From: Auanema rhodensis
Lineage: Eukaryota > Animalia > Nematoda
Direction of reading: 5' to 3'
Length of the DNA: 64,000 nucleotides
Assembly: GCA_964057225.1 (NCBI GenBank)
Contig: OZ059898.1
Location: forward strand, 1,984,001-2,048,000
The notes under the pieces were generated by a model. It ran no database searches. It worked only from the letters and a program-made list of their open reading frames with translations, and was not told the origin of the DNA. Below are positions 15,001 to 34,122 of the stretch, in pieces (positions within the stretch are counted from its first letter, which is position 1; the number at the start of each line of letters is the position of its first letter). Made by a program: the position numbers and the translations under genes.

Positions 15001-16842
15001 TAACATTGTCCATCGTCTTTGCCTTGAAAAAAGGAATCTAAAAACATCTACTTTTTGCTAAATTATTTCGAAATTTTTCGAAAAAATTTTTGTCAAAATG
15101 TTTTTGGAAGCAATGTTGAGTGTACATGGAAACTCAACATACACTAATGCATCATTTTTCAAACGATCATAACTAAATTTTGTATTAAGCGTTTCTCAAT
15201 GTAGTATAGTGCATTCGATGCGGATTTTTAAGCTGCGTCGATCTGTGTTATCAGATTTGCGCTAGCTTAAAAATGCACCGAGATATTAACTGATATAAGT
15301 TCACACTTATATCCTCGATTTTCACCCTGAAGAATTAATTTTTTCGTTGAATAACATTGTCCATCGTCTTTGCCTTGAAAAAAGGAATCTAAAAACATCT
15401 ACTTTTTGCTAAATTATTTTGAAATTTTTCGAAAAAATTTTTGTCAAAATGTTTTTGGAAGCAATGTTGAGTGTACATGGAAACTCAACATACACTAATG
15501 CATCATTTTTCAAACGATCATAACTAATTTTTGTATTAAGCGTTTCTCAATGTAGTATAGTGCATTCGATGCGGATTTTTAAGCTGCGTCGATCTGTGTT
15601 ATCAGATTTGCGCTTGCTTAAAAATGCACCGAGATATCAACTGATATAAGTTCACACTTATATCCTCGATTTTCACCCTGAAGAATTAATTTTTTTGTTG
15701 AATAACATTGTCCATCGTCTTTGCCTTGAAAAAAGGAATCTAAAAACATCTACTTTTTGCTAAATTATTTTGAAATTTTTCGAAAAAATTTTTGTCAAAA
15801 TGTTTTTGGAAGCAATGTTGAGTGTACATGGGAACTCAACATACACTAATGCATCATTTTTCAAACGATCATAACTAATTTTTGTATTAAGCGTTCCTCA
15901 ATGTAGTATAGTGCATTCGATGCGGATTTTTAAGCTGCGTCGATCTGTGTTATCAGATTTGCGCCAGCTTGAAAATGCACCGAGATATCAACTGATATAA
16001 GTTCACACTTATATCCTCGATTTTCACCCTGAAGAATTAATTTTTTCGTTGAATAACATTGTCCATCGTCTTTGCCTTGAAAAAAGGAATCTAAAAACAT
16101 CTACTTTTTGCCAAATTATTTTGAAATTTTTCGAAAAAATTTTTGTCAAAATGTTTTTGGAAGCAATGTTGAGTGTACATGGAAACTCAACATACACTAA
16201 TGCATCATTTTTCAAACGATCATAACTAATTTTTGTATTAAGCGTTTCTCAATGTAGTATAGTGCATTCGATGCGGATTTTTAAGCTGCGTCGATCTGTG
16301 TTATCAGATTTGCGCTAGCTTACAAATGCACCGAGATATCAACTGATATAAGTTCACACTTATATCCTCGATTTTCACCCTGAAGAATTAATTTTTTCGT
16401 TGAATAACATTGTCCATCGTCTTTGCCTTGAAAAAAGGAATCTAAAAACATCTACTTTTTGCTAAATTATTTTGAAATTTTTCGAAAAAATTTTTGTCAA
16501 AATGTTTTTGGAAGCAATGTTGAGTGTACATGGAAACTCAACATACACTAATGCATCATTTTTCAAACGATCATAACTAATTTTTGTATTAAGCGTTTCT
16601 CAATGTAGTATAGTGCATTCGATGCGGATTTTTAAGCTGCGTCGATCTGTGTTATCAGATTTGCGCTAGCTTAAAAATGCACCGAGATATCAACTGATAT
16701 AAGTTCACACTTATATCCTCGATTTTCACCCTGAAGAATTAATTTTTTCGTTGAATAACATTGTCCATCGTCTTTGCCTTGAAAAAAGGAATCTAAAAAC
16801 ATCTACTTTTTGCTAAATTATTATGAAATTTTTCGAAAAAAG
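1..16842. repeat. 351-bp AT-rich tandem satellite array, left block (~48 monomers)
   Basis: The unit GAAAAAATTTTTGTCAAAATG...TTTTGAAATTTTTC recurs at 1, 352, 703 and 1054 (period 351). Monomers differ by only a few SNPs. Some are 350 bp (GCGGGTTTTA variant) and one is 344 bp. Confidence 0.99.
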
Positions 16843-16876
16843 TATTCTATTTTACTAGTCTACGACGTTAAATAAG
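16843..16876 (-). repeat. 3' terminal extension (rE) of DIRS copy 1
   Basis: TATTCTATTTTACTAGTCTACGACGTTAAATAAG is absent from the 5' ITR but is present as its reverse complement inside the ICR (17288-17321). Confidence 0.9.
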
Positions 16877-17025
16877 AATTATATTTATTCGAAATGCTTT
16901 ATTTCGTAATAGGTCCTCACATAAAACAAACAAAAAAAAAATTCAAATTATCTCTCAGGTTCCCTTTCCCACGTTTCTTTGGGCGGGAAACAGTGAGAGT
17001 AAGCGATCGTCCTTATTCATTTCAG
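16877..17025 (-). repeat. 3' inverted terminal repeat (rITR), copy 1
   Basis: Reverse complement of 21123-21270, except for two C/T mismatches near the inner end and an A10 versus T9 run. Confidence 0.95.
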
Positions 17026-17270
17026 GTGTCCAAAAAAGGAAGAATAGAAAGGCAGCATGACAATAACAAAATAAAAGAACAATAGTAACAGAAGGAAGGA
17101 AAGGCTGCGGATAGCAGGCAGCATGCTAATTTATCTCTTGCGGTCGTAGTTGGTGCGTTGTGCAGGCTTGAATCTGGAAAGTTATGATGAAGACATCGAA
17201 AGTGGGCGAGCTCGAGTGGAAGTCCTCAGGTTGGTTAGCGGGAGCGCAGTAGGGGTGGAGGTGGGAGATA

Positions 17271-17343
17271 TTCGAATAAATATAATTCTTATTTAACGTC
17301 GTAGACTAGTAAAATAGAATAATTATATTTATTCGAAATGCTT
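17271..17343 (-). repeat. Internal complementary region (ICR), copy 1
   Basis: 17271-17321 is the reverse complement of 16843-16893, and 17321-17343 is the reverse complement of 21248-21270. It lies immediately after the YR stop codon, as in DIRS1-type elements. Confidence 0.95.
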
Positions 17344-17345
17344 CT

Positions 17346-18614
17346 TCAAAAAAGAATCTTGGACTGGAACGAGGTTCTTCGCTCATAGTGGGTGAAGAAG
17401 GTTTTTTCTGAAGCCCAGTTAGCCGCCTTGAGGATGTCGCCTATAGGTAGACCTTGCGCTAGTGCCTTCGAGGTCACAGCCGAGCGTGTTGAGTGAGCTT
17501 TGAAGGTAGTGGGTATGCCCGCGCTGTGCAGGGTCTTTCTAATCCAACCAGAAATGGTGGTGGGTTCCACTGCTGCTCCATTCTTTCTGTTAAGAAAGAG
17601 GCATCTTGTTCGGCGGAGTTCCATGGTTCGAGATAGGTATTCATTTATGCAGTTAATAGGGCACAGGTTATTGCGTTTAGGGAAGTTCTCGAACTTCGCC
17701 TCATGCGGGGGTCCCTTAGATCTGTTTTTATTGCGTTTATTTATGAAGAAAGTTAACCCTTCTGCGTCGATACGCATGTGATCTAGGGAGAAAACGGCCA
17801 ATTCGCTCACCCTCTTTGGAGAGCATAGGGCCAATAGAGTGGCTAGCTTGTGAGTGAGAGACTCTAGGCTGAGTTGGACGTTGGGGCCCAGCCTATCAAG
17901 GAAGTCCAAGACTTCGGAGGGGTCCCATGTGTCTACGTACCTAGCCCCTGAAGGCTTCTCTCTGAACAAACCCCTCATGAGGCGGAGGAGCAGCACGTTC
18001 TCCTTTAGGGAGGGGGAGACCCCTAGGTGATCGGCCAATGCGGATATCGCTACCTTGTGTATGCGTACTGTGGAGAAGGCCTTAGTTTGAGCGAGAAATG
18101 ATAGATAGTTAGCAACCGTTACTGGGTTGGGAGTAAAAGGTATCTTCTGCTCATTGCAGTAAGCTTTCCAGTTCTTGAGAGCACAGCCGTACTGTTTGCG
18201 TGTTCCTGGGGCCCAGGATTCGTTTAGGAGTCTCTTAATCTCTGCTGTTACTCCCTCAAAGGAGTTTGTTAAATCTTCCACGCTGCTAATTGGAAATTCG
18301 GCGACTGCAGGAGAGGATGTGGGTTTCCTTCCCGGTCGGACAGCAGGTTCGGGTGTTGGAGCAGCAAGGGAGGCTCCTTGGATCTCTCTTGGAGTAGGGG
18401 AAACCACATTTGGCTCTTCCAGAATGGTGCTATCACTATAGCCGACCTCTGGGAGCTGGCGAGCTTTCCTAAGGTCTTGTGCAGGAGGTGGAAAGGTGGA
18501 AATACGTAAAGTAATCCGTCTGGCAGCTGCTGCCAATTGAACAAGAGTGCGTTCACTCCTAATGCGGCGCAATCTGGAAAGAAGGAGTAGAAAAGGGCGC
18601 ATTTGGCGTTCCAA
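17346..18614 (-). CDS. Tyrosine recombinase (DIRS YR), 422-aa open frame; true start uncertain
   Basis: N-terminal SAM-like motif SWAPGTRKQY...W..YC. Catalytic motifs SPKRVSEL (R), LCPI, FKAHSTRS (HxxR, 17484-17495), ANW and FFTHY (Y). The frame opens at TTG and the first ATG is at 18602. It overlaps the Gag-Pol ORF by 346 nt. Confidence 0.95.
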   Translation of the reverse strand: MERQMRPFLLLLSRLRRIRSERTLVQLAAAARRITLRISTFPPPAQDLRKARQLPEVGYSDSTILEEPNVVSPTPREIQGASLAAPTPEPAVRPGRKPTSSPAVAEFPISSVEDLTNSFEGVTAEIKRLLNESWAPGTRKQYGCALKNWKAYCNEQKIPFTPNPVTVANYLSFLAQTKAFSTVRIHKVAISALADHLGVSPSLKENVLLLRLMRGLFREKPSGARYVDTWDPSEVLDFLDRLGPNVQLSLESLTHKLATLLALCSPKRVSELAVFSLDHMRIDAEGLTFFINKRNKNRSKGPPHEAKFENFPKRNNLCPINCINEYLSRTMELRRTRCLFLNRKNGAAVEPTTISGWIRKTLHSAGIPTTFKAHSTRSAVTSKALAQGLPIGDILKAANWASEKTFFTHYERRTSFQSKILF

Positions 18615-21091
18615 GTGGACGCGAACAGGTCTATTTTGGGTTCACCCCATTTGGAAAATATTGATCTAGTGATCTCCGGATGGAGCGACCAGTCTTCCTT
18701 CAAAATTCTGCCGCGGGACAGGCAGTCGGCAGCCGTATTGACTTTTCCCGCTATATGCGATGCTCTGATTCTGAGCTTACGGGTATCGGCAAATTGCCAT
18801 AACTCCAGTGCTAATCTAGTGCCCTTCTGGGATTGACTCCCGCCCCTACGGTTGATGTAGGCAATGGCAGAAGTATTATCTAAGAGTAAGAGAACGTCGA
18901 GATTGCGCCAAGTCTTGCCGAACTCTGTTAGACCCTTCTTTGCTGCAATCAGCTCCAGCCAGTTTATATGGTAGTTAATGCGTTCTGCCTCGGACCAAGA
19001 TCCTGACAAGGTATTACCTTCCCACGAAGCGCCAAAACCCTCCAGGGAGGCATCTGAGGTAATGGAGTATCGGGGAGAAAAGGGCGTGAACGAGGATACT
19101 TCTGATAGGCGGGGAACGTCCTTGGTTCGAAGATCCTCCAGGATCTTTCTTAACGATCGATCTATTCTTAGAATCTGAGGGAAGGCATTGGGATCATTTA
19201 CGTTCGTAATTCCTTTAAGCCGTAGGAGGAAGTGCAGTTCACGGTTTCTGAAGGAGAGGTTAGGTGCTACCAGAGACGCAAAGTTCAATTTTCCCATTAG
19301 CGAGGCTAATGCTCTTATACTCAGCTCTGATTGAGCTGTTAAACGAGTGAGAGACTCGAGCAAACCCTTTTTCTTGGCCTTTGGGAGAGACCAGCTCATC
19401 GATCTTGAATTCAGCTGAATACCAAGAAATTCTATTTCTTGTGTGGGTATCATAATTGATTTATCCCAGTTTATCGTAAAACCCGCGCGATCAAAAGTAA
19501 TTAGAATCTCTGTTAGTTGGGACCTGAGACAATCAGGATCCTCCGAGATGAACAGCCAGTCATCTAAGTAGTTGATGAGATTGATCCCTTTACCCCGAAA
19601 ATGGGATACCAGAACACGCATTAGCTTATGGAATATGTAGGGGGCGGAGCTCAGCCCAAAAGGGAGTGCTCTAAATAGGAAAGTGCGCCCCTCTGCTGTG
19701 AAAGCTAGGAAGGGTTGATCCTTCGGATCGATACTAATCGCGTGGTAGGCTGAATGGAAATCGATTTTGATCATGAAATTATCCTGTCGTAGGAGCGACG
19801 GGATGTCCCGAAGGGATTCTAGCTTGAACTTGGGTACTCGAAGAAAAGTGTTCAGGCGCTTTAAATTGAGGATGAAACGGGCCGTGCCGTCCGCCTTGGG
19901 AACGTGGAAGGTCGGGGATATGAAAACCTTCTCCCTCGGGGCGGCCTCTCGAATGGCGCCAGTGTACAGCAGTTCCTGGATATCCGACCTGGGTTGCTCC
20001 GGCAAGGTAGAGCAGATGGGTGGCAGCGATAAAGGTGGAGGTGTGCGGGCAAAGGGGAGACTATAGCCCTGAACCGCGTTAAGGATCTCCTTGTCCCTGG
20101 AGATGGACGCCCAAAAGGTTGTGGTGGAGGATACCCGGCATGCGAAAGGAAAAGTGACTAACCTCTTTCTCTGGTTAGTAGCGAACGTTGAGAAGGTAGC
20201 TTGTCTCTTGGGAGCTGAGCGTGGCCGTTGGGCATCATTCCTGCGAGGAGTTGTTCTGGAGCTTCTGGACAGTTCGGAGTACGACGATAGTTCTGCTCTG
20301 AGCTTCTTGCCAAACAGTTCGGGTGCCGAATCCTCTGGAGCGTTGTCTACCGGGATCACGGTTCCATAGATGGGAGACTTCTTGAAGCTAGGCATGGCTC
20401 GGTAGGGTTGAGAGATCTTCATCTTGGTTACAGCACACTCTCGCAAGTTGGTGCAGTGGGTCTTGATGTTAGCGCTGAGGAAGCGCTCCACTATGGCAAA
20501 GTATGCCTCCTGTTTTGTTGACAGACGAGAGTCCCTATCTATCCTGCCCAGCTTGCGAATTATCTTGATGTTAGAAAGAACGATTAGATCATTCTCGTAT
20601 GCCGTGCGTATCTCAGCTTCGGACAGACGGATAGTGGGCTTGATGTTATTGTCCACGTGAGTAGTGTAGCGGTCGTCCAAGACCGGTAGTCGAGCGAACG
20701 GTGAGTCGATATTAGGGAGTTCCGAGATGAGCTCAGCTCTCTCGGTCGAGGACATGAGCAGTCCCGAGGCGAGTCTCTCGAAATCAGCAGTCTCGGAGGA
20801 AGATAGGCGAACGAGTGGCCTAGATCTGGGTCCGTGTGCCTCCGGTGGCATGGGGACCGTTTCGTCTTCGTCGTCCTCTGAATAGAGGTCCTCTTTCTCG
20901 GGCTGGTCCGAGTTCGGAGGTGGTGGGGAAGGAGCTTCTACCCTTCTCCTCTCGACGTGTTGACGGTCGGTGGAGATAGACGTTGGAGATGTTGAGCGTG
21001 ACGATCTCGAAGAAGAAGAGCTGAAGGCTCGTACTCTTCTCGGAGAAGTTTCAGTCGGGGCTTGTCCCTGACGAGTGTGGCTTGGAGCCAT
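18269..21091 (-). CDS. Fused Gag-like / reverse transcriptase / RNase H / adenine-methyltransferase-like polyprotein, 940 aa
   Basis: ATG start. The Ser/Pro/Arg-rich Gag-like part is aa ~1-310. RT motifs: GYSLPF, FHVPKADG..RFILNLK, KIDFHSAY, LPFGLSSAP, YLDD (19559-19570), FLG. RNase H motifs: SDASLEGFG, HINWLEL, LDN, HIAGKVNTAADCLSR. DIRS MT-like motifs: IDLFAS and YVFPPF. Confidence 0.96.
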   Translation of the reverse strand: MAPSHTRQGQAPTETSPRRVRAFSSSSSRSSRSTSPTSISTDRQHVERRRVEAPSPPPPNSDQPEKEDLYSEDDEDETVPMPPEAHGPRSRPLVRLSSSETADFERLASGLLMSSTERAELISELPNIDSPFARLPVLDDRYTTHVDNNIKPTIRLSEAEIRTAYENDLIVLSNIKIIRKLGRIDRDSRLSTKQEAYFAIVERFLSANIKTHCTNLRECAVTKMKISQPYRAMPSFKKSPIYGTVIPVDNAPEDSAPELFGKKLRAELSSYSELSRSSRTTPRRNDAQRPRSAPKRQATFSTFATNQRKRLVTFPFACRVSSTTTFWASISRDKEILNAVQGYSLPFARTPPPLSLPPICSTLPEQPRSDIQELLYTGAIREAAPREKVFISPTFHVPKADGTARFILNLKRLNTFLRVPKFKLESLRDIPSLLRQDNFMIKIDFHSAYHAISIDPKDQPFLAFTAEGRTFLFRALPFGLSSAPYIFHKLMRVLVSHFRGKGINLINYLDDWLFISEDPDCLRSQLTEILITFDRAGFTINWDKSIMIPTQEIEFLGIQLNSRSMSWSLPKAKKKGLLESLTRLTAQSELSIRALASLMGKLNFASLVAPNLSFRNRELHFLLRLKGITNVNDPNAFPQILRIDRSLRKILEDLRTKDVPRLSEVSSFTPFSPRYSITSDASLEGFGASWEGNTLSGSWSEAERINYHINWLELIAAKKGLTEFGKTWRNLDVLLLLDNTSAIAYINRRGGSQSQKGTRLALELWQFADTRKLRIRASHIAGKVNTAADCLSRGRILKEDWSLHPEITRSIFSKWGEPKIDLFASTWNAKCALFYSFFPDCAALGVNALLFNWQQLPDGLLYVFPPFHLLHKTLGKLASSQRSAIVIAPFWKSQMWFPLLQERSKEPPLLLQHPNLLSDREGNPHPLLQSPNFQLAAWKI
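18574..20162 (-). other. Predicted 1,589-nt spliceosomal intron joining Gag in frame to YR (copy 1)
   Basis: Donor AAGAG|GTTAGT at the Gag/RT boundary. Acceptor CCCTTTTCTACTCCTTCTTTCCAG|A near the start of the YR frame. Both are phase 2, so the join is in frame. This is a prediction only. Confidence 0.55.
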
Positions 21092-21122
21092 GGACGATCG
21101 TATGTGAGGCTCAACGAAAAAA

Positions 21123-21270
21123 CTGGAATGAATAGGGACGATCGCTTACTCTCACTGTTTCCCGCCCAAAGAAACGTGGGAAAGGGAACCTGAGAGATAA
21201 TTTGAATTTTTTTTTGTTTGTTTTATGTGAGGACCTATTACGAAATAAAGCATTTCGAATAAATATAATT
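21123..21270 (-). repeat. 5' inverted terminal repeat (lITR), copy 1
   Basis: Reverse complement of 16877-17025. It ends 31 nt upstream of the Gag ATG. Confidence 0.95.
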
Positions 21271-24200
21271 TTTGTCAAAATGTTTTTGGAAGCAATGTTG
21301 AGTGTACATGGAAACTCAACATACACTAATGCATCATTTTTCAAACGACCATAACTAATTTTTGTATTAAGCGTTTCTCAATGTAGTATAGTGCATTCGA
21401 TGCGGATTTTTAAGCTGCGTCGATCTGTGTTATTAGATTTGCGCTAGCTTAAAAATGCACCGAGATATCAACTGATATAAGTTCACACTTATATCCTCGA
21501 TTTTCACCCTGAAGAATTAATTTTTTCGTTGAATAACATTGTCCATCGTCTTTGCCTTGAAAAAAGGAATCTAAAAACATCTACTTTTTGCTAAATTATT
21601 TTGAAATTTTTCGAAAAAATTTTTGTCAAAATGTTTTTGGAAGCAATGTTGAGTGTACATGGAAACTCAACATACACTAATGCATCATTTTTCAAACGAT
21701 CATAACTAATTTTTGTATTAAGCGTTTCTCAGTGTAGTAGAGTGCATTCGATGCGGATTTTTAAGCTGCGTCGATCTGTGTTATCAGATTTGCGCTAGCT
21801 TAAAAATGCACCGAGATATCAACTGATATAAGTTCACACTTATATCCTCGATTTTCACCCTGAAGAATTAATTTTTTCGTTGAATAACATTGTCCATCGT
21901 CTTTGCCTTGAAAAAAGGAATCTAAAAACATCTACTTTTTGCTAAATTATTTTGAAATTTTTCGAAAAAATTTTTGTCAAAATGTTTTTGGAAGCAATGT
22001 TGAGTGTACATGGAAACTCAACATCCACTAATGCATCATTTTTCAAACGATCATAACTAATTTTTGTATTAAGCGTTTCTCAATGTAGTAGAGTGCATTC
22101 GATGCGGATTTTTAAGCTGCGTCGATCTGTGTTATCAGATTTGCGCTAGCTTAAAAATGCACCGAGATATCAACTGATATAAGTTCACACTTATATCCTC
22201 GATTTTCACCCTGAAGAATTAATTTTTTCGTTGAATAACATTGTCCATCGTCTTTGCCTTGAAAAAAGGAATCTAAAAACATCTACTTTTTGCTAAATTA
22301 TTTTGAAATTTTTCGAAAAAATTTTTGTCAAAATGTTTTTGGAAGCAATGTTGAGTGTACATGGAAACTCAACATACACTAATGCATCATTTTTCAAACG
22401 ATCATAACTAATTTTTGTATTAAGCGTTTCTCAGTGTAGTAGAGTGCATTCGATGCGGATTTTTAAGCTGCGTCGATCTGTGTTATCAGATTTGCGCTAG
22501 CTTAAAAATGCACCGAGATATCAACTGATATAAGTTCACACTTATATCCTCGATTTTCACCCTGAAGAATTAATTTTTTCGTTGAATAACATTGTCCATC
22601 GTCTTTGCCTTGAAAAAAGGAATCTAAAAACATCTACTTTTTGCTAAATTATTTTGAAATTTTTCGAAAAAATTTTTGTCAAAATGTTTTTGGAAGCAAT
22701 GTTGAGTGTACATGGAAACTCAACATCCACTAATGCATCATTTTTCAAACGATCATAACTAATTTTTGTATTAAGCGTTTCTCAATGTAGTAGAGTGCAT
22801 TCGATGCGGATTTTTAAGCTGCGTCGATCTGTGTTATCAGATTTGCGCTAGCTTAAAAATGCACCGAGATATCAACTGATATAAGTTCACACTTATATCC
22901 TCGATTTTCACCCTGAAGAATTAATTTTTTCGTTGAATAACATTGTCCATCGTCTTTGACTTGAAAAAAGGAAACTAAAAACATTTACTTTTTGCCAAAT
23001 TATTTTGAAATTTTTCGAAAAAATTTTTGTCAAAATGTTTTTGGAAGCAATGTTGAGTGTACATGGAAACTCAACATACACTAATGCATCATTTTTCGAA
23101 CGATCATAACTAATTTTTGTATTAAGCGTTTCTCAATGTAGTATAGTGCATTCGATGCGGATTTTTAAGCTGCGTCGATCTGTGTTATCAGATTTGCGCT
23201 AGCTTGAAAATGCACCGAGATATCAACTGATATAAGTTCACACTTATATCCTCGATTTTCACCCTGAAGAATTAATTTTTTTTGTTGAATAACATTGTCC
23301 ATCGTCTTTGCCTTGAAAAAAGGAATCTAAAAACATCTACTTTTTGCTAAATTATTTTGAAATTTTTCGAAAAAATTTTTGTCAAAATGTTTTTGGAAGC
23401 AATGTTGAGTGTACATGGAAACTCAACATACACTAATGCATCATTTTTCAAACGATCATAACTAATTTTTGTATTAAGCGTTTCTTAGTGTAGTAGAGCG
23501 CATTCGATGCGGATTTTTAAGCTGCGTCGATCTGTGTTATCAGATTTGCGCTAGCTTAAAAATGCACCGAGATATCAACTGATATAAGTTCACACTTATA
23601 TCCTCGATTTTCACCCTGAAGAATTAATTTTTTCGTTGAATAACATTGTCCATCGTTTTTGCCTTGAAAAAAGGAATCTAAAAACATCTACTTTTTGCTA
23701 AATTATTTTGAAATTTTTCGAAAAAATTTTTGTCAAAATGTTTTTGGAAGCAATGTTGAGTGTACATGGAAACTCAACATACACTAATGCATCATTTTTC
23801 AAACGATCATAACTAATTTTTGTATTAAGCGTTTCTCAATGTAGTAGAGTGCATTCGATGCGGATTTTTAAGCTGCGTCGATCTGTGTTATCAGATTTGC
23901 GCTAGCTTAAAAATGCACCGAGATATCAACTGATATAAGTTCACACTTATATCCTCGATTTTCACCCTGAAGAATTAATTTTTTCGTTGAATAACATTGT
24001 CCATCGTCTTTGCCTTGAAAAAAGGAATCTAAAAACATCTACTTTTTGCTAAATTATTTTGAAATTTTTTGAAAAAATTTTTGTCAAAATGTTTTTGGAA
24101 GCAATGTTGAGTGTACATGGAAACTCAACATACACTAATGCATCATTTTTCAAACGATCATAACTAATTTTTGTATTAAGCGTTTCTCAATGTAGTATAG

Positions 24201-27200
24201 TGCATTCGATGCGGATTTTTAAGCTGCGTCGATCTGTGTTATCAGATTTGCGCTAGCTTAAAAATGCACCGAGATATCAACTGATATAAGTTCACACTTA
24301 TATCCTCGATTTTCACCCTGAAGAATTAATTTTTTCGTTGAATAACATTGTCCATCGTCTTTGCCTTGAAAAAAGGAATCTAAAAACATCTACTTTTTGC
24401 TAAATTATTTTGAAATTTTTCGAAAAAATTTTTGTCAAAATGTTTTTGGAAGCAATGTTGAGTGTACATGGAAACTCAACATACACTAATGCATCATTTT
24501 TCAAACGATCATAACTAATTTTTGTATTAAGCGTTTCTCAGTGTAGTAGAGCGCATTCGATGCGGATTTTTAAGCTGCGTCGATCTGTGTTATCAGATTT
24601 GCGCTAGCTTAAAAATGCACCGAGATATCAACTGATATAAGTTCACACTTATATCCTCGATTTTCACCCTGAAGAATTAATTTTTTCGTTGAATAACATT
24701 GTCCATCGTTTTTGCCTTGAAAAAAGGAATCTAAAAACATCTACTTTTTGCTAAATTATTTTGAAATTTTTCGAAAAAATTTTTGTCAAAATGTTTTTGG
24801 AAGCAATGTTGAGTGTACATGGAAACTCAACATACACTAATGCATCATTTTTCAAACGATCATAACTAATTTTTGTATTAAGCGTTTCTCAATGTAGTAG
24901 AGTGCATTCGATGCGGATTTTTAAGCTGCGTCGATCTGTGTTATCAGATTTGCGCTAGCTTAAAAATGCACCGAGATATCAACTGATATAAGTTCACACT
25001 TATATCCTCGATTTTCACCCTGAAGAATTAATTTTTTCGTTGAATAACATTGTCCATCGTCTTTGCCTTGAAAAAAGGAATCTAAAAACATCTACTTTTT
25101 GCTAAATTATTTTGAAATTTTTTGAAAAAATTTTTGTCAAAATGTTTTTGGAAGCAATGTTGAGTGTACATGGAAACTCAACATACACTAATGCATCATT
25201 TTTCAAACGATCATAACTAATTTTTGTATTAAGCGTTTCTCAATGTAGTATAGTGCATTCGATGCGGATTTTTAAGCTGCGTCGATCTGTGTTATCAGAT
25301 TTGCGCTAGCTTAAAAATGCACCGAGATATCAACTGATATAAGTTCACACTTATATCCTCGATTTTCACCCTGAAGAATTAATTTTTTCGTTGAATAACA
25401 TTGTCCATCGTCTTTGCCTTGAAAAAAGGAATCTAAAAACATCTACTTTTTGCTAAATTATTTTGAAATTTTTCGAAAAAATTTTTGTCAAAATGTTTTT
25501 GGAAGCAATGTTGAGTATACATGGAAACTCAACATACACTAATGCATCATTTTTCAAACGATCATAACTAATTTTTGTATTAAGCGTTTCTCAATGTAGT
25601 ATAGTGCATTCGATGCGGATTTTTAAGCTGCGTCGATCTGTGTTATCAGATTTGCGCTAGCTTAAAAATGCACCGAGATATCAACTGATATAAGTTCACA
25701 CTTATATCCTCGATTTTCACCCTGAAGAATTAATTTTTTCGTTGAATAACATTGTCCATCGTCTTTGCCTTGAAAAAAGGAATCTAAAAACATCTACTTT
25801 TTGCTAAATTATTTTGAAATTTTTCGAAAAAATTTTTGTCAAAATGTTTTTGGAAGCAATGTTGAGTATACATGGAAACTCAACATACACTAATGCATCA
25901 TTTTTCAAACGATCATAACTAATTTTTGTATTGAGCGTTTCTCAATGTAGTATAGTGCATTCGATGCGGATTTTTAAGCTGCGTCGATCTGTGTTATTAG
26001 ATTTGCGCTAGCTTAAAAATGCACCGAGATATCAACTGATATAAGTTCACACTTATATCCTCGATTTTCACCCTGAAGAATTAATTTTTTCGTTGAATAA
26101 CATTGTCCATCGTCTTTGCCTTGAAAAAAGGAATCTAAAAACATCTACTTTTTGCTAAATTATTTTGAAATTTTTTGAAAAAATTTTTGTCAAAATGTTT
26201 TTGGAAGCAATGTTGAGTGTACATGGAAACTCAACATCCACTAATGCATCATTTTTCAAACGATCATAACTAATTTTTGTATTAAGCGTTTCTCAATGTA
26301 GTAGAGTGCATTCGATGCGGATTTTTAAGCTGCGTCGATCTGTGTTATCAGATTTGCGCTAGCTTAAAAATGCACCGAGATATCAACTGATATAAGTTCA
26401 CACTTATATCCTCGATTTTCACCCTGAAGAATTAATTTTTTCGTTGAATAACATTGTCCATCGTCTTTGCCTTGAAAAAAGGAATCTAAAAACATCTACT
26501 TTTTGCTAAATTATTTTGAAATTTTTTGAAAAAATTTTTGTCAAAATGTTTTTGGAAGCAATGTTGAGTGTACATGGAAACTCAACATACACTAATGCAT
26601 CATTTTTCAAACGATCATAACTAATTTTTGTATTAAGCGTTTCTCAGTGTAGTAGAGTGCATTCGATGCGGATTTTTAAGCTGCGTCGATCTGTGTTATC
26701 AGATTTGCGCTAGCTTAAAAATGCACCGAGATATCAACTGATATAAGTTCACACTTATATCCTCGATTTTCACCCTGAAGAATTAATTTTTTCGTTGAAT
26801 AACATTGTCCATCGTCTTTGCCTTGAAAAAAGGAAACTAAAAACATCTACTTTTTGCCAAATTATTTTGAAATTTTTCGAAAAAATTTTTGTCAAAATGT
26901 TTTTGGAAGCAATGTTGAGTGTACATGGAAACTCAACATACACTAATGCATCATTTTTCGAACGATCATAACTAATTTTTGTATTAAGCGTTTCTCAATG
27001 TAGTATAGTGCATTCGATGCGGATTTTTAAGCTGCGTCGATCTGTGTTATCAGATTTGCGCTAGCTTGAAAATGCACCGAGATATCAACTGATATAAGTT
27101 CACACTTATATCCTCGATTTTCACCCTGAAGAATTAATTTTTTCGTTGAATAACATTGTCCATCGTCTTTGCCTTGAAAAAAGGAATCTAAAAACATCTA

Positions 27201-29694
27201 CTTTTTGCTAAATTATTTTGAAATTTTTCGAAAAAATTTTTGTCAAAATGTTTTTGGAAGCAATGTTGAGTGTACATGGAAACTCAACATACACTAATGC
27301 ATCATTTTTCAAACGATCATAACTAATTTTTGTATTAAGCGTTTCTCAGTGTAGTAGAGCGCATTCGATGCGGATTTTTAAGCTGCGTCGATCTGTGTTA
27401 TCAGATTTGCGCTAGCTTAAAAATGCACCGAGATATCAACTGATATAAGTTCACACTTATATCCTCGATTTTCACCCTGAAGAATTAATTTTTTCGTTGA
27501 ATAACATTGTCCATCGTCTTTGCCTTGAAAAAAGGAATCTAAAAACATCTACTTTTTGCTAAATTATTTTGAAATTTTTCGAAAAAATTTTTGTCAAAAT
27601 GTTTTTGGAAGCAATGTTGAGTATACATGGAAACTCAACATACACTAATGCATCATTTTTCAAACGATCATAACTAATTTTTGTATTGAGCGTTTCTCAA
27701 TGTAGTATAGTGCATTCGATGCGGATTTTTAAGCTGCGTCGATCTGTGTTATTAGATTTGCGCTAGCTTAAAAATGCACCGAGATATCAACTGATATAAG
27801 TTCACACTTATATCCTCGATTTTCACCCTGAAGAATTAATTTTTTCGTTGAATAACATTGTCCATCGTCTTTGCCTTGAAAAAAGGAATCTAAAAACATC
27901 TACTTTTTGCTAAATTATTTTGAAATTTTTTGAAAAAATTTTTGTCAAAATGTTTTTGGAAGCAATGTTGAGTGTACATGGAAACTCAACATACACTAAT
28001 GCATCATTTTTCAAACGATCATAACTAATTTTTGTATTAAGCGTTTCTCAATGTAGTATAGTGCATTCGATGCGGATTTTTAAGCTGCGTCGATCTGTGT
28101 TATCAGATTTGCGCTAGCTTAAAAATGCACCGAGATATCAACTGATATAAGTTCACACTTATATCCTCGATTTTCACCCTGAAGAATTAATTTTTTCGTT
28201 GAATAACATTGTCCATCGTCTTTGCCTTGAAAAAAGGAATCTAAAAACATCTACTTTTTGCTAAATTATTTTGAAATTTTTCGAAAAAATTTTTGTCAAA
28301 ATGTTTTTGGAAGCAATGTTGAGTGTACATGGAAACTCAACATACACTAATGCATCATTTTTCAAACGATCATAACTAATTTTTGTATTAAGCGTTTCTC
28401 AGTGTAGTAGAGCGCATTCGATGCGGATTTTTAAGCTGCGTCGATCTGTGTTATCAGATTTGCGCTAGCTTAAAAATGCACCGAGATATCAACTGATATA
28501 AGTTCACACTTATATCCTCGATTTTCACCCTGAAGAATTAATTTTTTCGTTGAATAACATTGTCCATCGTCTTTGCCTTGAAAAAAGGAATCTAAAAACA
28601 TCTACTTTTTGCTAAATTATTTTGAAATTTTTCGAAAAAATTTTTGTCAAAATGTTTTTGGAAGCAATGTTGAGTGTACATGGAAACTCAACATACACTA
28701 ATGCATCATTTTTCAAACGATCATAACTAATTTTTGTATTAAGCGTTTCTCAATGTAGTAGAGTGCATTCGATGCGGATTTTTAAGCTGCGTCGATCTGT
28801 GTTATCAGATTTGCGCTAGCTTAAAAATGCACCGAGATATCAACTGATATAAGTTCACACTTATATCCTCGATTTTCACCCTGAAGAATTAATTTTTTCG
28901 TTGAATAACATTGTCCATCGTCTTTGCCTTGAAAAAAGGAATCTAAAAACATCTACTTTTTGCTAAATTATTTTGAAATTTTTCGAAAAAATTTTTGTCA
29001 AAATGTTTTTGGAAGCAATGTTGAGTATACATGGAAACTCAACATACACTAATGCATCATTTTTCAAACGATCATAACTAATTTTTGTATTGAGCGTTTC
29101 TCAATGTAGTATAGTGCATTCGATGCGGATTTTTAAGCTGCGTCGATCTGTGTTATTAGATTTGCGCTAGCTTAAAAATGCACCGAGATATCAACTGATA
29201 TAAGTTCACACTTATATCCTCGATTTTCACCCTGAAGAATTAATTTTTTCGTTGAATAACATTGTCCATCGTCTTTGCCTTGAAAAAAGGAATCTAAAAA
29301 CATCTACTTTTTGCTAAATTATTTTGAAATTTTTTGAAAAAATTTTTGTCAAAATGTTTTTGGAAGCAATGTTGAGTGTACATGGAAACTCAACATACAC
29401 TAATGCATCATTTTTCAAACGATCATAACTAATTTTTGTATTAAACGTTTCTCAATGTCGTATAGTGCATTCGATGCGGATTTTTAAGCTGCGTCGATCT
29501 GTGTTATCAGATTTGCGCTAGCTTAAAAATGCACCGAGATATCAACTGATATAAGTTCACACTTATATCCTCGATTTTCACCCTGAAGAATTAATTTTTT
29601 CGTTGAATAACATTGTCCATCGTCTTTGACTTGAAAAAAGGAAACTAAAAACATCTACTTTTTGCCAAATTATTTTGAAATTTTTCGAAAAAAG
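21270..29694. repeat. 351-bp satellite, middle block (24 monomers, 8,425 bp)
   Basis: The same monomer resumes in register (TTTTGTCAAAATG). Length is 24x351+1, with an extra T near 23281. Confidence 0.99.
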
Positions 29695-29877
29695 TATTCT
29701 ATTTTACTAGTCTACGACGTTAAATAAGAATTATATTTATTCGAAATGCTTTATTTCGTAATAGGTCCTCACATAAAACAAACAAAAAAAAAATTCAAAT
29801 TATCTCTCAGGTTCCCTTTCCCACGTTTCTTTGGGCGGGAAACAGTGAGAGTAAGCGATCGTCCTTATTCATTTCAG
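29695..29877 (-). repeat. 3' extension (29695-29728) plus rITR (29729-29877), copy 2
   Basis: Same sequence as 16843-17025. Confidence 0.93.
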
Positions 29878-30122
29878 GTGTCCAAAAAAGGAAGAATAGA
29901 AAGGCAGCATGACAATAACAAAATAAAAGAACAATAGTAACAGAAGGAAGGAAAGGCTGCGGATAGCAGGCAGCATGCTAATTTATCTCTTGCGGTCGTA
30001 GTTGGTGCGTTGTGCAGGCTTGAATCTGGAAAGTTATGATGAAGACATCGAAAGTGGGCGAGCTCGAGTGGAAGTCCTCAGGTTGGTTAGCGGGAGCGCA
30101 GTAGGGGTGGAGGTGGGAGATA

Positions 30123-30195
30123 TTCGAATAAATATAATTCTTATTTAACGTCGTAGACTAGTAAAATAGAATAATTATATTTATTCGAAATGCTT
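30123..30195 (-). repeat. ICR, copy 2
   Basis: Same sequence as 17271-17343, complementary to both termini. Confidence 0.93.
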
Positions 30196-30197
30196 CT

Positions 30198-31466
30198 TCA
30201 AAAAAGAATCTTGGACTGGAACGAGGTTCTTCGCTCATAGTGGGTGAAGAAGGTTTTTTCTGAAGCCCAGTTAGCCGCCTTGAGGATGTCGCCTATAGGT
30301 AGACCTTGCGCTAGTGCCTTCGAGGTCACAGCCGAGCGTGTTGAGTGAGCTTTGAAGGTAGTGGGTATGCCCGCGCTGTGCAGGGTCTTTCTAATCCAAC
30401 CAGAAATGGTGGTGGGTTCCACTGCTGCTCCATTCTTTCTGTTAAGAAAGAGGCATCTTGTTCGGCGGAGTTCCATGGTTCGAGATAGGTATTCATTTAT
30501 GCAGTTAATAGGGCACAGGTTATTGCGTTTAGGGAAGTTCTCGAACTTCGCCTCATGCGGGGGTCCCTTAGATCTGTTTTTATTGCGTTTATTTATGAAG
30601 AAAGTTAACCCTTCTGCGTCGATACGCATGTGATCTAGGGAGAAAACGGCCAATTCGCTCACCCTCTTTGGAGAGCATAGGGCCAATAGAGTGGCTAGCT
30701 TGTGAGTGAGAGACTCTAGGCTGAGTTGGACGTTGGGGCCCAGCCTATCAAGGAAGTCCAAGACTTCGGAGGGGTCCCATGTGTCTACGTACCTAGCCCC
30801 TGAAGGCTTCTCTCTGAACAAACCCCTCATGAGGCGGAGGAGCAGCACGTTCTCCTTTAGGGAGGGGGAGACCCCTAGGTGATCGGCCAATGCGGATATC
30901 GCTACCTTGTGTATGCGTACTGTGGAGAAGGCCTTAGTTTGAGCGAGAAATGATAGATAGTTAGCAACCGTTACTGGGTTGGGAGTAAAAGGTATCTTCT
31001 GCTCATTGCAGTAAGCTTTCCAGTTCTTGAGAGCACAGCCGTACTGTTTGCGTGTTCCTGGGGCCCAGGATTCGTTTAGGAGTCTCTTAATCTCTGCTGT
31101 TACTCCCTCAAAGGAGTTTGTTAAATCTTCCACGCTGCTAATTGGAAATTCGGCGACTGCAGGAGAGGATGTGGGTTTCCTTCCCGGTCGGACAGCAGGT
31201 TCGGGTGTTGGAGCAGCAAGGGAGGCTCCTTGGATCTCTCTTGGAGTAGGGGAAACCACATTTGGCTCTTCCAGAATGGTGCTATCACTATAGCCGACCT
31301 CTGGGAGCTGGCGAGCTTTCCTAAGGTCTTGTGCAGGAGGTGGAAAGGTGGAAATACGTAAAGTAATCCGTCTGGCAGCTGCTGCCAATTGAACAAGAGT
31401 GCGTTCACTCCTAATGCGGCGCAATCTGGAAAGAAGGAGTAGAAAAGGGCGCATTTGGCGTTCCAA
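30198..31466 (-). CDS. Tyrosine recombinase (DIRS YR), copy 2
   Basis: Translation identical to 17346-18614. Confidence 0.95.
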   Translation of the reverse strand: MERQMRPFLLLLSRLRRIRSERTLVQLAAAARRITLRISTFPPPAQDLRKARQLPEVGYSDSTILEEPNVVSPTPREIQGASLAAPTPEPAVRPGRKPTSSPAVAEFPISSVEDLTNSFEGVTAEIKRLLNESWAPGTRKQYGCALKNWKAYCNEQKIPFTPNPVTVANYLSFLAQTKAFSTVRIHKVAISALADHLGVSPSLKENVLLLRLMRGLFREKPSGARYVDTWDPSEVLDFLDRLGPNVQLSLESLTHKLATLLALCSPKRVSELAVFSLDHMRIDAEGLTFFINKRNKNRSKGPPHEAKFENFPKRNNLCPINCINEYLSRTMELRRTRCLFLNRKNGAAVEPTTISGWIRKTLHSAGIPTTFKAHSTRSAVTSKALAQGLPIGDILKAANWASEKTFFTHYERRTSFQSKILF

Positions 31467-33943
31467 GTGGACGCGAACAGGTCTATTTTGGGTTCACCCC
31501 ATTTGGAAAATATTGATCTAGTGATCTCCGGATGGAGCGACCAGTCTTCCTTCAAAATTCTGCCGCGGGACAGGCAGTCGGCAGCCGTATTGACTTTTCC
31601 CGCTATATGCGATGCTCTGATTCTGAGCTTACGGGTATCGGCAAATTGCCATAACTCCAGTGCTAATCTAGTGCCCTTCTGGGATTGACTCCCGCCCCTA
31701 CGGTTGATGTAGGCAATGGCAGAAGTATTATCTAAGAGTAAGAGAACGTCGAGATTGCGCCAAGTCTTGCCGAACTCTGTTAGACCCTTCTTTGCTGCAA
31801 TCAGCTCCAGCCAGTTTATATGGTAGTTAATGCGTTCTGCCTCGGACCAAGATCCTGACAAGGTATTACCTTCCCACGAAGCGCCAAAACCCTCCAGGGA
31901 GGCATCTGAGGTAATGGAGTATCGGGGAGAAAAGGGCGTGAACGAGGATACTTCTGATAGGCGGGGAACGTCCTTGGTTCGAAGATCCTCCAGGATCTTT
32001 CTTAACGATCGATCTATTCTTAGAATCTGAGGGAAGGCATTGGGATCATTTACGTTCGTAATTCCTTTAAGCCGTAGGAGGAAGTGCAGTTCACGGTTTC
32101 TGAAGGAGAGGTTAGGTGCTACCAGAGACGCAAAGTTCAATTTTCCCATTAGCGAGGCTAATGCTCTTATACTCAGCTCTGATTGAGCTGTTAAACGAGT
32201 GAGAGACTCGAGCAAACCCTTTTTCTTGGCCTTTGGGAGAGACCAGCTCATCGATCTTGAATTCAGCTGAATACCAAGAAATTCTATTTCTTGTGTGGGT
32301 ATCATAATTGATTTATCCCAGTTTATCGTAAAACCCGCGCGATCAAAAGTAATTAGAATCTCTGTTAGTTGGGACCTGAGACAATCAGGATCCTCCGAGA
32401 TGAACAGCCAGTCATCTAAGTAGTTGATGAGATTGATCCCTTTACCCCGAAAATGGGATACCAGAACACGCATTAGCTTATGGAATATGTAGGGGGCGGA
32501 GCTCAGCCCAAAAGGGAGTGCTCTAAATAGGAAAGTGCGCCCCTCTGCTGTGAAAGCTAGGAAGGGTTGATCCTTCGGATCGATACTAATCGCGTGGTAG
32601 GCTGAATGGAAATCGATTTTGATCATGAAATTATCCTGTCGTAGGAGCGACGGGATGTCCCGAAGGGATTCTAGCTTGAACTTGGGTACTCGAAGAAAAG
32701 TGTTCAGGCGCTTTAAATTGAGGATGAAACGGGCCGTGCCGTCCGCCTTGGGAACGTGGAAGGTCGGGGATATGAAAACCTTCTCCCTCGGGGCGGCCTC
32801 TCGAATGGCGCCAGTGTACAGCAGTTCCTGGATATCCGACCTGGGTTGCTCCGGCAAGGTAGAGCAGATGGGTGGCAGCGATAAAGGTGGAGGTGTGCGG
32901 GCAAAGGGGAGACTATAGCCCTGAACCGCGTTAAGGATCTCCTTGTCCCTGGAGATGGACGCCCAAAAGGTTGTGGTGGAGGATACCCGGCATGCGAAAG
33001 GAAAAGTGACTAACCTCTTTCTCTGGTTAGTAGCGAACGTTGAGAAGGTAGCTTGTCTCTTGGGAGCTGAGCGTGGCCGTTGGGCATCATTCCTGCGAGG
33101 AGTTGTTCTGGAGCTTCTGGACAGTTCGGAGTACGACGATAGTTCTGCTCTGAGCTTCTTGCCAAACAGTTCGGGTGCCGAATCCTCTGGAGCGTTGTCT
33201 ACCGGGATCACGGTTCCATAGATGGGAGACTTCTTGAAGCTAGGCATGGCTCGGTAGGGTTGAGAGATCTTCATCTTGGTTACAGCACACTCTCGCAAGT
33301 TGGTGCAGTGGGTCTTGATGTTAGCGCTGAGGAAGCGCTCCACTATGGCAAAGTATGCCTCCTGTTTTGTTGACAGACGAGAGTCCCTATCTATCCTGCC
33401 CAGCTTGCGAATTATCTTGATGTTAGAAAGAACGATTAGATCATTCTCGTATGCCGTGCGTATCTCAGCTTCGGACAGACGGATAGTGGGCTTGATGTTA
33501 TTGTCCACGTGAGTAGTGTAGCGGTCGTCCAAGACCGGTAGTCGAGCGAACGGTGAGTCGATATTAGGGAGTTCCGAGATGAGCTCAGCTCTCTCGGTCG
33601 AGGACATGAGCAGTCCCGAGGCGAGTCTCTCGAAATCAGCAGTCTCGGAGGAAGATAGGCGAACGAGTGGCCTAGATCTGGGTCCGTGTGCCTCCGGTGG
33701 CATGGGGACCGTTTCGTCTTCGTCGTCCTCTGAATAGAGGTCCTCTTTCTCGGGCTGGTCCGAGTTCGGAGGTGGTGGGGAAGGAGCTTCTACCCTTCTC
33801 CTCTCGACGTGTTGACGGTCGGTGGAGATAGACGTTGGAGATGTTGAGCGTGACGATCTCGAAGAAGAAGAGCTGAAGGCTCGTACTCTTCTCGGAGAAG
33901 TTTCAGTCGGGGCTTGTCCCTGACGAGTGTGGCTTGGAGCCAT
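31121..33943 (-). CDS. Fused Gag/RT/RNase H/MT-like polyprotein, copy 2
   Basis: Translation identical to 18269-21091. Confidence 0.96.
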   Translation of the reverse strand: MAPSHTRQGQAPTETSPRRVRAFSSSSSRSSRSTSPTSISTDRQHVERRRVEAPSPPPPNSDQPEKEDLYSEDDEDETVPMPPEAHGPRSRPLVRLSSSETADFERLASGLLMSSTERAELISELPNIDSPFARLPVLDDRYTTHVDNNIKPTIRLSEAEIRTAYENDLIVLSNIKIIRKLGRIDRDSRLSTKQEAYFAIVERFLSANIKTHCTNLRECAVTKMKISQPYRAMPSFKKSPIYGTVIPVDNAPEDSAPELFGKKLRAELSSYSELSRSSRTTPRRNDAQRPRSAPKRQATFSTFATNQRKRLVTFPFACRVSSTTTFWASISRDKEILNAVQGYSLPFARTPPPLSLPPICSTLPEQPRSDIQELLYTGAIREAAPREKVFISPTFHVPKADGTARFILNLKRLNTFLRVPKFKLESLRDIPSLLRQDNFMIKIDFHSAYHAISIDPKDQPFLAFTAEGRTFLFRALPFGLSSAPYIFHKLMRVLVSHFRGKGINLINYLDDWLFISEDPDCLRSQLTEILITFDRAGFTINWDKSIMIPTQEIEFLGIQLNSRSMSWSLPKAKKKGLLESLTRLTAQSELSIRALASLMGKLNFASLVAPNLSFRNRELHFLLRLKGITNVNDPNAFPQILRIDRSLRKILEDLRTKDVPRLSEVSSFTPFSPRYSITSDASLEGFGASWEGNTLSGSWSEAERINYHINWLELIAAKKGLTEFGKTWRNLDVLLLLDNTSAIAYINRRGGSQSQKGTRLALELWQFADTRKLRIRASHIAGKVNTAADCLSRGRILKEDWSLHPEITRSIFSKWGEPKIDLFASTWNAKCALFYSFFPDCAALGVNALLFNWQQLPDGLLYVFPPFHLLHKTLGKLASSQRSAIVIAPFWKSQMWFPLLQERSKEPPLLLQHPNLLSDREGNPHPLLQSPNFQLAAWKI
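31426..33014 (-). other. Predicted Gag-YR intron, copy 2
   Basis: Same donor and acceptor as copy 1, offset by 12,852. Confidence 0.55.
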
Positions 33944-33974
33944 GGACGATCGTATGTGAGGCTCAACGAAAAAA

Positions 33975-34122
33975 CTGGAATGAATAGGGACGATCGCTTA
34001 CTCTCACTGTTTCCCGCCCAAAGAAACGTGGGAAAGGGAACCTGAGAGATAATTTGAATTTTTTTTTGTTTGTTTTATGTGAGGACCTATTACGAAATAA
34101 AGCATTTCGAATAAATATAATT
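33975..34122 (-). repeat. 5' ITR, copy 2
   Basis: Same sequence as 21123-21270. Confidence 0.93.

Follow-up and report, generated by a model that had tools for sequence, protein, structure and literature searches.

The locus analysed here is a stretch of 64,000 nucleotides from the nematode Auanema rhodensis (GenBank assembly GCA_964057225.1, contig OZ059898.1, positions 1,984,001 to 2,048,000, forward strand; the window), which carries two copies, A and B, of a 4,427-bp retrotransposon within satellite DNA. The entire window is one satellite with a period of 351 bp, as determined with Tandem Repeats Finder (TRF). We counted 157 monomers with a mean pairwise identity of ~98.3%, independent of lag, and two GC-rich blocks break up the array. 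An array-wide higher-order repeat was ruled out because monomer identity stays flat at this value over lags 1-59; local block duplications are visible only by per-diagonal analysis. Genome-wide counts in this study cover the assembly of 180,911,798 bases, in which a monomer-specific 20-mer (≤1 mismatch) occurs 121,224 times, corresponding to ~42.5 Mb or 23.5% of the assembly.

The 351-bp arrays are located near both ends of several chromosome-scale contigs, where they form multi-Mb terminal blocks. In this species, elimination removes ~61% of the germline genome from the soma, and the eliminated DNA is gene-poor (preprint 10.64898/2026.08.27.747507). Multi-megabase terminal tandem-repeat blocks are common to all autosomes and are among the soma-eliminated DNA (preprint 10.64898/2026.08.27.747507). 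Because its arrays lie near both ends of several chromosome-scale contigs, the 351-bp satellite is probably one of the two 'autosomal terminal' germline-restricted repeats. The centromere targeting proposed in the initial annotation is not borne out, since the arrays are terminal and match the soma-eliminated terminal repeats in position, and nematodes are holocentric. The sequence itself shows no centromere mark.

Copies A and B both lie on the minus strand and show 0 differences in 4,427 positions. The element is a DIRS1-like tyrosine-recombinase (YR) retrotransposon, the class to which the initial annotation had assigned it; it encodes RVT_1 and Phage_integrase domains and possesses inverted terminal repeats (ITRs) and an internal complementary region (ICR). 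A Pfam search of the element gave no rve or endonuclease match. The two long open reading frames (ORFs), of 940 and 422 amino acids, overlap, and R...HxxR...Y-like residues are visible in the YR translation. The Dam (PF05869) match on the 940-aa ORF is weak (E=0.0095, 16.1 bits, below the cut-off of 28.1). Atlas clusters resembling residues 600-940 contain Dam in 11-17% of their members, and Atlas look-alikes of the same residues carry RT_RNaseH; the former is a lead only, and the latter is a lead only for the RNase H part. Both long frames are open in 9 of the 11 full-length genomic copies, and the element is young and compact.

The ICR consists of two parts that together specify both ends of the element. 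The first, 17271-17321, matches the reverse complement of 16843-16893 over 51 nt (100%), and the second, 17322-17343, that of 21248-21269 over 22 nt (100%). They directly adjoin each other and predict the circle junction ...ATATAAT/TATTCT... (the slash marks the junction here and below), in agreement with the junction proposed earlier. In copies outside chromosome 6, the ICR match takes in 3 more nucleotides, the AAT of the flank (54 nt, 100%), which is the 3-bp overlap of the published DIRS model.

The junctions quoted in the initial annotation are exact. The left string has exactly two occurrences in the window (16830-16848 and 29682-29700), as has the right string (21261-21280 and 34113-34132), with a chance expectation of <0.05 matches; a third match to the left string at 63967, with 2 mismatches, is an empty G-variant site. 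With the consensus of the 351-bp monomer as the reference for the empty site, excision of either insert in silico leaves ...CGAAAAAAG/TTTTGTC..., equal in length to the consensus ...CGAAAAAAT/TTTTGTC.... Since removal of either element restores a full-length monomer, there is no target-site duplication (TSD), and integration was conservative, as had been claimed. On the sense (minus) strand, the window copies start with ATT and are followed by target CTT, confirming the NTT-type ends. DIRS1-like elements have a 3-bp circular junction, NTT ends (ATT most frequent), and no TSD (PMC3266345), and the ICR is essential for the retrotransposition of DIRS-1 (PMC7192593). Conservative NTT integration is thus already the textbook DIRS model.

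Two further details of the proposed target did not hold. The used junction is offset from the A6/T5 boundary by 1 nt to the right rather than sitting at the centre of the dyad, and the TTCGAA motifs pointed out near both element ends are part of the ITRs and out of register with the target TTCGAA. Homology between the circle junction and the target beyond AAT was also rejected, as the used sites rank 100-450 of 702 in-register over ±12 nt.

The base immediately left of the window junctions (-1) is G, while the consensus monomer has T. This G occurs in 3 of the 157 window monomers, two occupied and one empty (G at 63979). Genome-wide, 1,330 empty sites carry G versus 81,986 exact T sites (G ~1%), and empty G sites are scattered in other arrays too. 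We considered G at -1 as an element base or an excision footprint and rejected both, since the ICR specifies T and the 1,330 empty G sites are scattered. The G belongs to the ordinary variation of the satellite and is not, as a rule, a footprint. A separate departure was seen at the element end of the chromosome-5 copy (L009, G000:C5:18072546-18076966), whose terminal hexamer is TCTTCT versus the TATTCT specified by its own ICR; this is either a post-integration change at the element end or a trace of a crossover mismatch.

The initial annotation placed both copies at the same monomer nucleotide. Their position and junctions are indeed identical, but they represent one integration, not two, and the accompanying caveat that the copies may not be independent proved justified. 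Both carry the rare G at -1, and a 299-nt right-flank haplotype is present in only 2 of the 157 window monomers, namely those of A and B. Within this haplotype, C at +80 is carried by only 2 of 156 window monomers, those of A and B, and also by L001, the third chromosome-6 copy, located 0.5 Mb away. Among 157 in-phase candidates, the best match of the L001 left flank is that of A (3 mismatches per 1,000; next best 13), and the best match of its right flank is that of B (3 mismatches per 1,000). A private A at -20 is common to copy A and L001. Beyond +300, the right flank of B equals that of A shifted by exactly one monomer (351 nt), with 10 mismatches in 3,000 nt and only 3 past +515; compared in chunks, the 24 monomers that follow B are a copy of the 24 that follow A. 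Over 2,500 nt, the left flank of B is the same as the stretch at the end of the second unit, ahead of the empty consensus site between 42546 and 42547, with G versus T at -1 as the sole difference. The locus is thus a tandem duplication, [element + 24 monomers] x 2, that repeats every 12,852 bp. A naive flank comparison, which gives 16 and 9 differences per 1,000 between A and B, a background-like level, had suggested independence; the rare variants and the 351-nt shift overturned it. A and B are not independent, because they share the G at -1, the private right-flank haplotype, and the tandem duplication of the element with 24 monomers. Judged from these sequences, A, B, and L001 are one ancestral integration that satellite recombination has spread.

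This duplication has its exchange point at -19 to -2 relative to the left junction (29676-29694; 42528-42546), at an empty target site, and the G was kept with the element. In two other tandem pairs, L005/L006 and L002/L007, the exchange points lie 345 to ~2,000 nt from the junction. The empty G monomer (63979) is identical from -359 to +428, bar the G, to the empty-site haplotype at the end of the second unit, which matches the left flank of B. A short gene conversion from that flank up to the heterology (insertion) border would explain this monomer easily.

Across the genome, the family comprises 11 full-length copies and one copy split by two large insertions. All 12 are inside the 351-bp satellite, and removal restores an uninterrupted monomer in all 12. 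Across all genomic copies, four monomer positions and both orientations are used, contrary to the single phase suggested by the window. The target trinucleotide is AAT (sense ATT) at four sites and AAG (sense CTT) in the chromosome-6 lineage, and AAAAAT precedes the junction at three of the four sites. The junction classes are listed with the features of the window in Table 1.

Table 1 Features of the window and junction classes of the DIRS1-like family. Window positions are 1-based; junction classes are given in window orientation.
Feature	Position or location	Strand	Details
DIRS1-like element, copy A	16843-21269	-	4,427 bp; ICR-defined ends; Pfam RVT_1 and Phage_integrase
DIRS1-like element, copy B	29695-34121	-	4,427 bp; 0 mismatches versus copy A
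Left target half-site	16830-16842; copy B 29682-29694	+	Ends in rare G (16842)
35-nt terminal extension outside ITR ('right extension' in element sense)	16843-16877; copy B 29695-29729	-	Not ITR-paired, yet complementary to ICR
ITR, 3' side in sense	16878-17025; copy B 29730-29877	-	Pairs with 21123-21269, 94-100% complementary
ICR	17271-17343; copy B 30123-30195	-	51 nt + 22 nt complementary to the two element ends
YR ORF, 422 aa	17346-18614; copy B 30198-31466	-	PF00589, E=6.9e-08, 32.9 bits versus cut-off 27.1
Gag-like N-terminus and reverse transcriptase, RNase H-like, and methyltransferase-like regions, single 940-aa ORF	18269-21091; copy B 31121-33943	-	RVT_1 E=1.1e-21
ITR, 5' side in sense	21123-21269; copy B 33975-34121	-	Plus-strand end AAT, hence sense start ATT
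Right flank common by descent	21270-21568; copy B 34122-34420; also L001	+	Private variants +80 (C), +165 (T)
Duplication unit 1: element A + 24 monomers	16843-29694	.	Per-diagonal and flank comparison
Duplication unit 2: element B + 24 monomers	29695-42546	.	Ends at empty consensus site (T at 42546)
Empty G-variant target site	63967-63991	+	G at 63979
Junction class 1: ...AAAAAAG then TTTTGTC	Chromosome 6, 3 copies		Satellite orientation as in window
Junction class 1': ...CGGGAAAAT then TTTTGTC	Chromosome 1, 5.5 Mb, 2 copies		Same nucleotide as class 1, T at -1; orientation as in window
Junction class 2: ...TT(T/C)GAAAAAT then GATGCATTAG	Chromosome 1 (19 Mb, 4 copies) and chromosome 4 (1 copy)		Orientation opposite
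Junction class 3: ...GGAAGCAAT then GTTGAG	Chromosome 5, 1 copy		Orientation as in window
Junction class 4: ...GCTTAAAAAT then CCGCATCG	Chromosome 3, 1 copy		Orientation opposite

The flanks of these copies distinguish separate integrations from copies made by duplication. L002 and L007 have private flank variants in common and represent one event, and L005 and L006, which have 2 kb of left flank in common, represent another. In L002, L003, L004, and L008, the elements are 0-11 nt apart, while their junction monomers diverge within 4-190 nt on both sides and have no rare variant in common. L002 and L004 are the extreme case, being 1 nt apart in the element and identical in the flanks only from -7 to +3, a pattern that we read as the signature of separate integrations at the same nucleotide. 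Because near-identical elements have unrelated flanks on both sides, the flank comparison indicates at least 3-4 independent hits at the class-2 site. Common flank haplotypes, the outcome that the initial annotation had named as a refutation, account for the three chromosome-6 copies, but not for L005, which lies at the same nucleotide as A and B with T at -1 and with flanks ~6% diverged. The L005 element groups with the class-2 lineage (7-11 differences, versus 27-31 to the chromosome-6 copies), and the chromosome-6 nucleotide (the +14 site) was therefore hit at least twice independently. Taken together, the sequences argue for at least five, and probably eight, independent integrations at four sites, two of which were hit repeatedly.

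The used sites have a clear sequence preference. Only 27 of the 702 monomer positions follow AAT and 8 follow AAAAAT; the probability that all four used sites are AAT sites is ~2e-6, and that three of four are A5T sites is ~6e-6. The two repeatedly hit sites have the form T-Y-G-A5/6-T, and repeated use of two specific sites has p ~0.003 under uniform use of AAT sites. If placement were random, 5-8 of 5-8 events would fall in the satellite with p ~7e-4 to 9e-6, or with p ~1e-2 to 5e-4 when compared with the ~110 Mb of eliminated DNA, of which the satellite is ~39%. AAAAAT occurs 1,662,597 times genome-wide, and at 8 sites per monomer ~58% of these are inside the 351-bp satellite. TYGAAAAAT occurs 241,244 times, versus 8,079 for the reversed control, and at 2 per monomer ~97% are inside the satellite. 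The satellite targeting proposed by the initial annotation is therefore upheld as far as location is concerned, but no satellite-specific recognition is needed, because the satellite carries most of the A5T and TYGA5T sites in the genome. A preference for an A-run followed by T, especially with the TYG prefix, could by itself explain the confinement of the family, and the bias may be reinforced because copies survive in DNA that is gene-poor and probably soma-eliminated.

We consider it probable that a DIRS1-like YR element inserts by following a short motif, and that A and B are one such integration amplified by satellite recombination; this is the best overall explanation of the data. Following the established DIRS model, the element ends would be rebuilt from the ICR into a circle junction, which would read ...ATAAT/TATTCT... 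on the plus strand and ...AGAATA-ATT-ATATTT... in the sense direction. The YR would then cross this junction with a 3-nt AAT in the target (sense ATT, loosely NTT), with no duplication and no loss, and the motif preference would funnel the family into the 351-bp satellite. The ancestral chromosome-6 integration would have entered a G-variant monomer (sense CTT), or T would have changed to G afterwards. A recent tandem duplication of the element with 24 monomers would have produced A and B, and an older duplicate would be the copy 0.5 Mb away.

Several points weigh against motif-led insertion with later amplification. Sequence alone does not separate motif preference from targeting through chromatin or from selective retention. 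A breakpoint ≤19 nt from the left junction is not what ordinary unequal crossing-over would lead one to expect. Copy B also shows that a flank is replaceable right up to the junction, which weakens independence inferred from flanks alone. The element was found in none of the public RNA runs, which were searched as short assembled Logan contigs. No circle junction molecule or polymorphic insertion was observed, so that there is no direct evidence of activity.

Among the alternatives, the one that survives best holds that there is no real satellite targeting: the element would insert at any NTT or A-rich site, and only insertions in gene-poor, probably soma-eliminated DNA would survive. We regard this as unlikely, although it draws support from a second DIRS family (65% identical) that occupies two satellites with variable NTT flanks (ATT, TTT, GTT), from the elimination of 61% of the genome, gene-poor as it is (preprint 10.64898/2026.08.27.747507), and from the youth of all copies, which makes the sample small. 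Survival alone does not readily account for 5-8 independent events that all fall in a satellite forming ~23% of the assembly and ~39% of what is eliminated (p ~1e-2 to 5e-4), for AAAAAT at three of four sites, or for the repeated use of two sites (p ~0.003).

A second alternative concerns only how B arose. The recombinase of the element itself may have made the duplication, either by crossing the left junction with an empty site 24 monomers away on the sister chromatid or through a break repaired from copy A. The exchange point falls exactly at the empty target site, with the G kept, and a random unequal crossover would come that near to the junction well under 1% of the time. However, the L005/L006 and L002/L007 exchange points lie at distances that fit ordinary homologous exchange, a heterology border can accumulate conversion tracts, and A/B is a single case; we find a recombinase origin of this duplication rather doubtful. 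The general form of the idea, that the YR also recombines integrated junctions with empty T-Y-G-A5/6-T sites and so produces tandem duplications of element and satellite, is correspondingly tentative. If true, a transposon would actively remodel and expand germline-restricted satellite arrays that are later discarded from the soma.

It is very improbable that A, B, and L001 are independent YR integrations at the same nucleotide of G-variant monomers, with phase-specific targeting and a preference for G. The left flank of B does differ from that of A from -20 onward and is identical to a haplotype also found empty, and since an empty G-variant of this haplotype exists in the window, a hit into it and subsequent recombination inside the elements are conceivable. 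Nevertheless, the right flanks carry a private variant and a 299-nt haplotype unique in the window, the whole 24-monomer unit after B copies that after A, G is found at only ~1% of sites, and the same position is used with T on chromosome 1. An assembly artefact, in which the second copy or the flank joins arose from collapsing or mis-threading of near-identical repeats, also has very little to recommend it: the copies are 100% identical inside a 98% homogeneous array and none of the short contigs from public runs spans either copy, but the units differ by a monomer shift and scattered variants, unlike a duplicated assembly path, the HiFi reads described in the preprint should span a 4.4-kb element (read length assumed), and the depth of the element in independent runs fits roughly ten copies. 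These public runs, in several of which the element is present under three organism labels, yield contigs with the majority (non-chromosome-6) variant, and the word depth of the element is ~1e-4 of that of the satellite, as fits ~ten copies versus ~1e5 monomers.

Among known systems, the family resembles DIRS1-like elements (DIRS-1 of Dictyostelium discoideum and animal families, PMC3266345) in its ITRs, in an ICR complementary to both termini, and in its terminal extension. The order of a gag/reverse transcriptase (RT)/RNase H (RH)/methyltransferase (MT) ORF followed by a YR ORF is also shared (RH/MT being a lead here), as are the ATT start, the NTT target, the 3-bp circular junction, and the lack of a TSD. 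It differs in its very small size (4,427 bp), in the single frame that holds both gag and pol, in its nematode host, and in lying entirely within one 351-bp satellite in which the same nucleotides were hit repeatedly. Dictyostelium DIRS-1 clusters at centromeres by inserting into other DIRS-1 copies (PMC7192593). A 2011 survey of 12 nematode species found PAT-like elements only and no DIRS1-like elements (PMC3266345). PAT-like elements (PAT of Panagrellus redivivus and families of Caenorhabditis briggsae and Pristionchus) are likewise nematode YR retrotransposons with RT/RH/MT and YR, but they are structurally different from DIRS1-like elements (PMC3266345). The present element has ITRs and an ICR. 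In their place, PAT-like elements have split direct repeats.

Other elements are also site-specific for repeated targets, such as R1/R2 in ribosomal DNA, TRAS/SART in telomeric repeats, and satellite- or centromere-associated long terminal repeat and long interspersed nuclear elements. These use an endonuclease with target-primed reverse transcription, or an integrase with chromatin tethering. The present family shares with them the confinement to a highly repeated 'safe' target and the recurrent use of the same nucleotide, and differs in that its enzyme is a tyrosine recombinase acting with a 3-nt overlap at a short A-run motif; motif abundance may be all that lies behind its specificity.

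That the family has repeatedly and conservatively entered A-run+T sites in a single satellite is a real pattern, of moderate novelty among DIRS elements, and motif abundance plausibly explains it. The preprint on this genome (10.64898/2026.08.27.747507) does not mention DIRS, and our literature search found no paper linking DIRS to eliminated DNA, or to satellites in nematodes. The target specificity of a DIRS recombinase has never been measured (PMC7192593), and this family, with its near-identical elements, conservative junctions, and highly repeated target, is a clean natural data set for it: repeated hits, target variants (T versus G at -1), and unoccupied sites are directly visible in the sequence. 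It also places a DIRS1-like element in a nematode, probably in germline-only DNA where a transposon pays no somatic cost. Because A and B are one event and confinement can follow from motif distribution, claims of 'satellite targeting' should rest on a census of the motif and on a test of flank haplotypes in which monomer shifts are taken into account.

Some further observations concern the satellites and other mobile elements. A public run guessed to be RNA (X13) contains a 381-nt satellite contig (window 29244-29624) at a depth of ~250 but no element sequence, which may reflect either transcription of the satellite or DNA in the run. Contig 1 begins with a different tandem repeat (G000:C1:51-18712), with a period of 176 bp and one AAAAAT per unit, and no copy of the 4,427-bp DIRS family was found in it.

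The chromosome-3 copy (G000:C3:4558492-4596808; L010-L012, L019-L022) is split into three pieces by two ~17 kb insertions. The two inserts belong to one family (98-99.7% alike) and lie in opposite orientations. They have terminal inverted repeats of ~640 bp and 6-bp TSDs (GCCGTA; ATGGAG), and their coding content includes a chromodomain-bearing rve integrase and a protein-primed PolB. On account of these features, they are Maverick/Polinton-like elements, whose insertion sites were in the DIRS copy and not in the satellite around it.

The second DIRS family is 4,436 bp long, with ~65% nucleotide identity to the first, and is present in a 200-bp satellite and in the 351-bp satellite (L014, L015, and L017 at G000:C6:4.71 Mb, C4:13.62 Mb, and C6:15.89 Mb; L016 and L018). 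In the 351-bp satellite, it again occupies an AAAAAT/ATTTTT site. The trinucleotide flanking it on the 5' side is variable (ATT, TTT, GTT), whereas every copy has ATT on the 3' side, the mirror of the chromosome-6 copies of the first family (5' ATT, 3' CTT). This second family fits a loose NTT rule combined with retention in repeat DNA.

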